Positions 19,201 to 21,648 of a stretch of DNA of 64,000 bases are shown piece after piece (within the stretch, counting starts at the first letter, position 1; each line of letters opens with the position of its first letter). The notes below the pieces were generated by a model. That model ran no database searches, was not told the origin of the DNA, and was given only the letters and a program-made list of their open reading frames with translations. The DNA is from Anaeramoeba ignava BMAN (lineage: Eukaryota > Protista > Anaeramoebae), in assembly GCA_028826165.1 (NCBI GenBank), contig JAPDFW010000092.1, positions 1,063,285 through 1,127,284 of the forward strand, given 5' to 3'. Made by a program: the position numbers and the translations under genes.

Positions 19201-21648
19201 GGGTTTTGAATTCGACATCATTTTGAAGAGTATTGATTTCTTCTTGAATAAAAATTGTTAGTTTTTGAGCGACTTCCTTCAGAATATCATATTGTTTTAA
19301 AAGTGAATCGGGTATCTTAATTTTGTTTTTTTGTTGATTTAATTGATTAATTTCCTTCTCAAGTTTTTCCACTTGATTTTTTTTAGTTTTCCATTCTTCT
19401 TCAAGTTTTTGGATTTTAGAATTTTTTTCTTCCAATTCTTGTTGGTTTTGAAGTTCGTTATCTTCAATTTGAAATCTTCGATTTTCTAAAACACGAATTT
19501 TTTGAGTAAGTTCCAAATATTTTGGTTTCTATTATAGAGTTATGAATTAATGAGAAATAAATAAAAAAGTTAAATTGGTTTTTTTTAAAAAAATAATACT
19601 TGAGTATGAAGCTCTTCTTGTCCTTCTCTAAGTTCTTTTTCAATCTCAAGTTTGGCTTTATGAAGTTTTGCTTTTTCTTGCTTTTTTGTTCTAACTTGTT
19701 CCAAAAGAACTTTTTCCCTAATTTGAAGTCTTTTAGAAATTTCATAATAATCACTCAATTCCTTTTTTGTTTGATTGAAATTGTTATCAATCCATCCCAA
19801 TTTCCAGAGAATATGTTCCAGCTTGATATCATGCAAAACTTGGAATAAATGGTTGAATTCTTCAACTTCTCTTAATTGAGCTTGAAATTGCTTTTTCTCG
19901 TTAATAACATCCCTTTTCTCTTTGATTTTTGTCATTGCTTGCGTTTCTGTTTCTTCTTTAATTTTCTTAAGTTCTTCATATTCCTTTCGTAATTCTTTTG
20001 GAGTACTCAAATCATCAATCAATTCAGATATTTCTTTTGGTGATTTTTGGGCAATATTTTGTACATCTCCTTGGAAAACTAAAAAATGCTTTGTTTTCAC
20101 ATAAATTCCAACTTTCTTCAAATTTTCCAGATATTTCTTTTGTGATTTTTGTTTGTGATCCACTCTATATTCTGATGTGCCATTGGGCAGTATCAATCTC
20201 GTAAAACTCATCTCTTTGGATTCGTTATCCTCCTTTTTTACGTTCAAAACAAGAGTTACTGATGCTTTTCTTCTTTGATTTTTTTTCTCGTCTTCATCTT
20301 CTCTTGATTTATCATTTTCGTCTTCAATAACCAGTTGTGGATCAAGCTCTTTCTCTCTATAAATCAGATCAGTTATTTTGGCTCCTCTTAAAGAAGATGT
20401 TGCGATCCCCAAAACAAAGCAAATTGCATCCATACAATTACTATTGTGAGTAACTGTTAAATCTCCAAGAAGAAATCTCCCGTTTCCATTTAGCTGGAAT
20501 CCATAATAATTTTGGCATCCAATTGATTCCACTTTTATATCTGATTCCAAAACTTGATTTCGGATCTTACTCGAAATTGCTTGTTTGTTTTTTTCTTTAT
20601 CAATCTTGATTTTGATTAAGGGTATTTTGCGGATTTGATTCCCTTTGAAAATCAATGTTTGCGAAAATGAGGAATGGTTTATGATTTGGGTTTTTATTCC
20701 AAGAGAATGCGCCAAAAAGGTTAAATCTTCAATTAATTTCTTGATTTTTTCTTGTTCAAGAAGTTGGATAGAAATTTTGTTCGAAGAAAATTTTGAACTG
20801 GAACATGAATCAATCAATCCTGCTAATAATTCAAATCTTATTTTTTCAGAGTTGAGTTTATAGTGTTCGGGAATAAAAGGAATATCAAGAAAAGAGGGAT
20901 ATTTATTGAGAAATGATTTGAATTGGGAATCACAATTAGTATCCAAATTATCATTTTGATTCAATGCAAGTTTAGAAATCAATTTTCCAGCTTGATAGGG
21001 AGGAAGTAACACATTTTGATGAGGAAATTGTGGAGAAACTTTGTATCCTTTAAACATACTTTTCCATAAACTTGATTTTTTCAAATAATCTTGAATGGAA
21101 ATATCAAGAATATCGCCAACTTGTTTAATTTCCTTTTTTTCCATCAAAAATGAATTAAGATATTCTTTTGCTTTTTGGAAAGCCATTTGTTTTGAGTCAA
21201 ATTCGTTTTCACTGAATTGTTTTGTTTTGAGATGGTTATTTTCTGAGATCCAAATCAAGTTCCAAATTCTTTTTGTTTCATCAAAAAATAAATTATGATT
21301 TTTGGATAGTCTTAATGAAAGAATATGTTGTAAATTTGCAGAATAAGAATTTGAATATTTTTTGGATGATATTTTAAACATTTCTCCAAAACCTACTGTT
21401 GTTGATAAAACTGTTCTTGGTTTTGAATCATCACCCATTAATAAATCTCCTTTTTTGATATCTTGAACAAACTTAGTTTTTCCATTGAATAACATAATTG
21501 GAGTATTTTTTCCAAGACATTTTCCTGATCCATTTGGTCCAATAATTGCTGTAAATTTTTTAAATGGACCAATTACATGTTTTCCTTTATATGATTTAAA
21601 ATTTTCAATTTCCAATCTTTCAATTAAAATTTGGTCTTCAATTTCCAT
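16253..21648 (-). CDS. SMC1: Structural maintenance of chromosomes protein 1 (cohesin), intein-containing, ~7 exons
   Basis: ENFKSYKG.HVIGPF..FTAIIGPNGSGK/SN.MDAI.FVLG, LVFQGDV, hinge (LFPGVYGR, FIPL, YACGNTLVCD, VTLDGT..GLITGG), [45 protein letters not shown]. Introns near 19599-19529, 19102-19041, ~18798-18701, ~18348-18272, ~18165-18082, ~16471-16402. Confidence 0.95.
20443..21519 (-). mobile_element. Intein (359 aa) in SMC1 Walker A, with degenerate LAGLIDADG homing endonuclease
   Basis: In-frame insert GPNGSGK|CLGKNTPI...NGRFLLGDLTVTHN|SNCMDAI. Cys1, block B (ANLQHIL), block F (YYGFQL), terminal His-Asn, +1 Ser, internal LLAGLIDSCS. Removing it restores the canonical GSGKSN.MDAI. Confidence 0.97.

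Follow-up and report, generated by a model that had tools for sequence, protein, structure and literature searches.

What is a 359-residue insert doing in the Walker A motif of a cohesin ATPase, and how could that ATPase be made with the insert in place? The question is raised by a 64,000-nucleotide stretch of contig JAPDFW010000092.1 of Anaeramoeba ignava BMAN (hereafter the window), in which a gene for the cohesin subunit structural maintenance of chromosomes 1 (SMC1) is interrupted in frame at its P-loop (positions 20443..21519, minus strand). We find that the insert is a genuine intein of class 1 and of the PI-SceI (VMA1) type, made up of a Hint domain, an AP2-like segment and a LAGLIDADG domain. 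In all likelihood it is a self-splicing but otherwise selfish and immobile passenger in SMC1, without a regulatory role and with a decayed endonuclease.

The insert matches Pfam Hom_end_hint (PF05203) over residues 1-358 (E 1e-15, 58.8 bits against a cut-off of 32.1), and a match to Hom_end (PF05204) at residues 216-280 (E 7e-5) is nested within it; a scan of NCBIfam returned nothing useful. The AlphaFold2 (AF2) model of the intein has a predicted local distance difference test (pLDDT) score of 92.3 and a predicted template modelling (TM) score (pTM) of 0.90. Its best Foldseek matches are crystal structures of PI-SceI (E ~1e-21, TM 0.70-0.74); further VMA inteins and Prp8 inteins come next. 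The N-terminal lobe of the Hint fold, residues 1-71 (21307..21519, minus strand; bounded by a phmmer alignment to PI-SceI residues 1-77), carries block A with Cys1 and block B, which reads Asn62-Leu-Gln-His65. The C-terminal lobe, residues 326-359 (20443..20544, minus strand), was placed by alignment and by AF2 strands 328-343, 348-351 and 355-358; it carries block F (YYGF...RFLLGD) and block G, where Thr-His-Asn is followed directly by the host's Ser. Seven residues, C1, G29, G43, H65, G340, H358 and N359, are invariant in an alignment of 127 family members, and the SMC1 intein has all of them; at least 90% of the members share N62. With Cys1, a block B His, a terminal His-Asn followed by Ser+1, a Hint fold and an in-frame insertion, the element is an intein of class 1.

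Between the two lobes, at the place of the DNA recognition region of PI-SceI, lies an AP2-like DNA-recognition segment (residues 75-127; 21139..21297, minus strand), in which DSSP assigns strands 75-80, 85-91 and 97-103 and a helix 110-127 to the AF2 model. Pfam AP2 scores these residues at E 0.021, below its cut-off, and 4 of the 127 family members match AP2, the best at 2.3e-6. Several A. ignava paralogues, namely those in an AAA protein, the signal recognition particle (SRP) receptor, an EF1A-like protein and MCM_d, lack the segment altogether.

The host gene, judged by its sequence, is cohesin SMC1 across head, hinge and head. Three exonic pieces, searched separately, all match SMC1 best, an assignment that stands on best matches among solved structures rather than on an orthology tree. 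The N-terminal head piece matches SMC1 chains at 2e-28 to 1e-25 against 8e-8 for SMC2 (phmmer against the PDB), the hinge piece matches SMC1 at 3e-34 against 4e-10 for SMC4, and the C-terminal head piece matches SMC1 at 4e-46 against 1e-24 for SMC4 (both from solved-structure searches). A frame scan traces a multi-exon gene on the minus strand down to ~16256; in the assembly the gene lies at contig C82:1079500-1084950. The SMC1 open reading frame that holds the intein (21648..19585, minus strand, 687 codons) starts as a typical SMC N-terminus, running from Met1 through FTAIIGPNGSGK to residue 43, and this N-extein (residues 1-43; 21520..21648, minus strand; Pfam SMC_N at residues 9-43) ends within the first part of Walker A, GPNGSGK. 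The insert then begins Cys-Leu-Gly-Lys-Asn-Thr and, 359 residues on, ends Leu-Thr-Val-Thr-His-Asn, after which the host resumes with Ser-Asn-Cys-Met-Asp-Ala-Ile. The part of the C-extein in this first exon (19588..20442, minus strand; phmmer against the PDB) comprises the Ser+1 that completes Walker A, what remains of the N-terminal half of the head, and the beginning of the coiled coil. Coiled coil, hinge and C-terminal head follow in later exons (16256..19528, minus strand; exon borders approximate), which were located by frame scan and by the hinge and C-terminal head matches. An intact LSGGEK signature motif and a hydrophobic-DEID Walker B motif are found in the C-terminal exon.

The first residue of the C-extein aligns with residue 39/40 of solved SMC1 chains (phmmer against the PDB), and the insert therefore lies exactly between the Lys and the Ser of Walker A (GPNGSGK/S, broken after Lys43). 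Removing it from between the flanks GPNGSGK and SNCMDAI would restore the conserved host motif. The initial annotation had proposed, from the letters alone, an intein at the GK/S position of SMC1 that starts with Cys, ends His-Asn before a Ser and has Hint blocks A, B, F and G intact. The translation, the family alignment, the Hint profile, the fold and the three SMC1 matches bear this out.

The insert also has the properties of coding sequence. Its 1077 nucleotides make 359 codons in the same frame as both SMC1 flanks, and its G+C content of 28% is that of the flanking exon (25-31%) rather than that of neighbouring intron and intergenic DNA (~15%), in a window of 20.2% G+C and a genome reported as 80.65% A+T (PMC11550330). 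The chance of meeting no stop in 359 codons at the base composition of the insert is 3e-14, none of 20000 shuffled versions remained open, and the other two frames contain 20 and 30 stops. Inspection of the sequence ends revealed no in-frame GT...AG intron from the insert boundaries. The deposited gene model of a sister SMC1 paralogue, named as an intein-containing precursor, retains its own intein. The exon-like composition and the open frame led us to reject the reading of the insert as an intron; the initial annotation, too, had described it as an in-frame insert.

How the ATPase could be made follows from this anatomy. The intein would be translated as part of an SMC1 precursor and would then remove itself by standard protein splicing, in class-1 chemistry that would engage His65 along with Cys1, His358, Asn359 and Ser+1. 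An N-S acyl shift at Cys1 would be followed by attack of the Ser+1 hydroxyl, Asn359 would then cyclise with the help of His358, and an O-N shift would recreate the Lys-Ser bond of Walker A. Since a functional P-loop would exist only in spliced SMC1, cohesin ATPase activity should depend on splicing; the initial annotation had drawn the same consequence, and it holds, as the P-loop cannot form with the insert in place. SMC1 would in this way offer a clear case, in a eukaryote, of an essential ATPase of chromosome maintenance that has a P-loop only after protein splicing.

The mobility enzyme of the intein, its LAGLIDADG homing-endonuclease domain, occupies residues of about 170-300 (20620..21012, minus strand; from Pfam Hom_end, AF2 helices, column counts and motif searches with regular expressions) and appears degenerate. 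Both LAGLIDADG helices, 174-186 and 225-237, are found in the AF2 model, and the catalytic acidic residue that an active enzyme would have in each motif seems to be missing: in the alignment columns where relatives have the catalytic Asp, the SMC1 intein has K183 and C239/S241. Of 192 external relatives, 127 have Asp at the end of the first motif and 129 at the end of the second. Neither the canonical block C motif nor that of block E was detected in any of the 18 A. ignava copies scored (0 of 18 for each), whereas the two occur in 50 and 52 of 78 viral copies (~64-67%) and in 102 and 122 of 192 external proteins, respectively; the loss of block C in A. ignava compared with viral copies has a Fisher p of 2e-7. 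The endonuclease of the SMC1 intein is thus probably inactive. The lack of catalytic motifs in the A. ignava copies scored is relevant to a published proposal, that spread from P-loop to P-loop is driven by promiscuous homing endonucleases of Anaeramoeba (PMC10710043): such spread, if any, would have taken place long ago or with viral enzymes acting in trans.

The SMC1 intein belongs to a very large family with a strong attachment to this one motif. A screen of the assembly (42.8 Mb, 147 contigs) for paralogous inteins found at least 30 within the genome, at 26-43% identity, the nearest being that of the SRP receptor at 43%. Nearly all the contiguous full-length copies begin immediately behind the Walker A GK of unrelated nucleoside triphosphatases (NTPases): three Lon genes, dynein, eIF5B, an ABC protein, four MCMs, an RFC-like protein, an AAA protein, the SRP receptor, an EF1A-like GTPase, a second SMC1 and an SMC3. 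The DNA context common to these insertions is ...GGN AAA / TGY...CAY AAY / WCN, with slashes at the two junctions. Outside the genome, 9014 clusters (50% identity) are matched with E<=1e-3, 1100 of them with E<=1e-30. Among 214 related instances, GK precedes the intein in 181, 213 have Thr, Ser or Cys at +1, and Cys1...His-Asn is found in 210. A search of IMG/VR returned more than 580 matching stretches, many of them on contigs of giant-virus metagenome-assembled genomes (GVMAGs), at 30-36% identity, and GK precedes the intein in 74 of the 78 full-length instances on viral contigs. The family thus prefers the position after the Walker A GK in about 85-95% of instances. Its members also occur in helicases of cultured phages, at 26-30% identity. 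No recent donor of the SMC1 intein was found among the family relatives, the best being the 43% intein of the same genome.

Some members of the family depart from this pattern or add detail to it. A P-type ATPase on contig C55 (L009:1501-2595) carries a same-family intein at its phosphorylation motif, DK/TGT, which is not a Walker A motif but again offers a Lys/Thr junction. In metagenome proteins P0068, P0081, P0077 and P0093 there are several family inteins per host, and among these hosts are back-to-back copies, in which the terminal His-Asn of one intein is directly followed by Cys1 of the next. In the SRP-receptor gene and one MCM gene (L021:1477-1503 and L022:1774-1800), an AT-rich stretch ending in AG, apparently an intron 3' splice site, adjoins the Cys1 codon of the intein.

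A same-site selfish family in dozens of unrelated NTPases favours a passive passenger in SMC1, and the loss of both catalytic Asp residues, shared with all the other A. ignava copies examined, makes an old immobile resident most likely. On this account the SMC1 intein is most likely an old, fixed inhabitant of the gene, kept only because its imprecise loss would destroy the P-loop. Several points weigh against so settled a picture. We infer the actual splicing of this intein, its constitutive behaviour and its immobility, and the motif loss is read from an alignment. The endonuclease scoring covered only the 18 contiguous full-length A. ignava copies out of at least 30. The intein trees (FastTree with 210 rows; a quick IQ-TREE run with 64 rows) are largely unresolved, which leaves the age and arrival route of the intein uncertain; they hold a weak A. 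ignava-only group (Shimodaira-Hasegawa-like approximate likelihood ratio test, SH-aLRT, 81) that may be a composition artefact.

The alternative that survives best is a conditional switch, in which splicing would be held back by oxidation of Cys1 or by a disulfide with a nearby Cys, and cohesin heads would need permissive (reducing) conditions to mature. Some prokaryotic inteins are known to splice conditionally, and the C-extein has a Cys at +3. The distribution of inteins among the nine SMC loci of the genome also speaks for a switch. Two loci are of SMC1 type, the window gene and a gene on contig C61 that matches SMC1 at 1e-86, with exteins only 31% identical to each other, and two are of SMC3 type (contig C90:285-293k and contig C137). 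All four cohesin loci have an intein at the same GK/S, while the P-loops of the other five (SMC2, two SMC4 copies and two other SMC-like genes) are uninterrupted; the SMC2 and SMC4 P-loop sites are identical to the SMC1 site at 39 of 48 and 35 of 48 nucleotides, yet have no intein. Against a switch stands the lack of any redox-trap sequence feature: the N-extein offers no Cys in the vicinity of Cys1, Ser occupies position +1, and the +3 Cys is missing from the SMC1 paralogue. Moreover, inteins of the family are found at this motif in viruses and in dozens of NTPases unrelated to one another, as expected of a selfish element, and the four cohesin inteins, at 28-33% identity, are not one another's closest relatives. 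The initial annotation had suggested splicing as a switch, for example through the redox state of Cys1, in an anaerobe; on this evidence we consider a switch improbable. The broader proposal, that cohesin ATPases and not condensin are specifically gated by splicing and that this dependence has been co-opted as conditional post-translational control in an anaerobe, we regard as very improbable.

Several of the SMC loci have peculiarities of their own. The intein of the C137 SMC3 gene (L033:1890-1965) shifts to another frame downstream of block B, in a stretch of five A, either a real frameshift that breaks the gene or a homopolymer error of the nanopore-based assembly, and it too is without the AP2-like segment. 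The two SMC4 copies (L035, C38:46417-46950; L036, C104) are near-identical, and six in-frame stops interrupt the C-terminal head region of the C38 copy, as expected of a pseudogene or of an unpolished duplicate contig. Both SMC3 genes and the C61 SMC1 gene have an intron a few codons upstream of the P-loop (L031-L033). The SMC-like gene on C80 (L034:7190-7340) has an intein-free P-loop, GPNGSGK-STILE, with an intron about five codons later, and resembles the mutual exclusion of introns and inteins discussed in PMC10710043.

Less likely again is that the insert no longer splices, so that this SMC1 copy is dead or neofunctionalised and its ATPase permanently interrupted. The decay of the endonuclease part, the second SMC1 paralogue on contig C61 and the frame break inside the intein of one SMC3 copy would all fit such a loss, but the splicing residues that are invariant across the 127 relatives are all intact and the full 1077-nucleotide frame has stayed open in a genome of 20% G+C. 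The extein, moreover, retains Walker A, the signature motif and Walker B, and an intein likewise splits the other SMC1 copy; among the nine SMC-family loci we found no SMC1 free of an intein. Least credible of all is an intron removed at the RNA level, an assembly artefact or viral contamination fused to SMC1: the genome is rich in introns and intein relatives are abundant on giant-virus contigs, but composition and open frame, a complete Hint and endonuclease fold, boundaries without GT...AG, two flanks in frame within one 687-codon reading frame of a multi-exon eukaryotic gene, and a paralogue whose annotated model keeps its intein all speak against it.

Both the genome and the type of element found in its SMC1 gene are already on record, and this intein is probably among the hundred or so reported there. 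The initial annotation had described Anaeramoeba as reportedly intein-rich and suspected that this intein might already be catalogued. Both points find support: Gallot-Lavallee et al. 2023 (PMC10710043) reported 103 inteins in A. ignava, the published record, and the sister SMC1 paralogue (P0074, 100% identical to the C61 gene) is named at NCBI 'intein-containing structural maintenance of chromosomes smc family member precursor', a clear indication that the genome authors recognised intein-bearing SMC proteins. Likewise, the Lon locus L006 is where P0231 maps, a protein named 'intein-containing protease precursor [Anaeramoeba ignava]'. The same paper demonstrated splicing for three other Anaeramoeba inteins and lists only eight insertion sites common to A. 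ignava and A. flamelloides, SMC not among them, and a homologue search with P0074 did not return an SMC1 orthologue from A. flamelloides. The main text of the paper does not mention SMC or cohesin, and a literature search on inteins together with SMC and cohesin returned only methods papers. What is added here is incremental, namely a P-loop-specific viral family, uniformly decayed endonucleases and a cohesin-only distribution among SMC genes.

The inteins described in PMC10710043 are among the nearest known systems. They come from the same genome, are spread over non-homologous proteins including Walker A sites and have links to Nucleocytoviricota, and the hosts named there, Lon, dynein, MCM and eIF5B, carry the closest paralogues of the SMC1 intein. 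The 'cluster 1' P-loop inteins of that paper are unlike it, being of class 3 with atypical N-termini, and we rejected membership in that cluster for the SMC1 intein, which has Cys1 and a standard class-1 block layout and has only the P-loop location in common with it. We infer instead that it may belong to the large virus-linked 'cluster 15'.

The P-loop inteins of giant viruses and phages, the latter including Bacteroides phage BS162P1 and Klebsiella phage MEW1, resemble the SMC1 intein at 30-36% identity over the full 359 residues, in their position after GK and in a C-terminus that reads ...FTVTHN followed by T or S. They differ in that the LGDG and DxDG motifs, neither of which the SMC1 copy has, survive in about two thirds of viral copies, and in their hosts, which are helicases, kinases and packaging ATPases and not SMC proteins. 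A same-site allele is present in an SMC homologue of a Joint Genome Institute (JGI) metagenome (P0228, residues 31-596), where the junctions read GPNGCGK/C...HN/SN. Unlike the SMC1 intein, however, it belongs to another intein family (Intein_splicing PF14890 with LAGLIDADG_3), and its host is a prokaryote-type SMC and not cohesin SMC1.

PI-SceI, the VMA1 intein of S. cerevisiae, is an active enzyme, whereas the SMC1 intein has both catalytic Asp residues replaced. The two are only ~15% identical in structural alignment, the SMC1 intein is ~95 residues shorter, and the host of PI-SceI is V-ATPase subunit A with Cys+1, where here it is SMC1 with Ser+1. Yet they have the same plan, a Hint domain with a DNA-recognition insert and a LAGLIDADG domain, detected by the same PF05203 and PF05204 profiles, and they have in common the NxxH of block B and the C-terminus that runs from YYG to HN.

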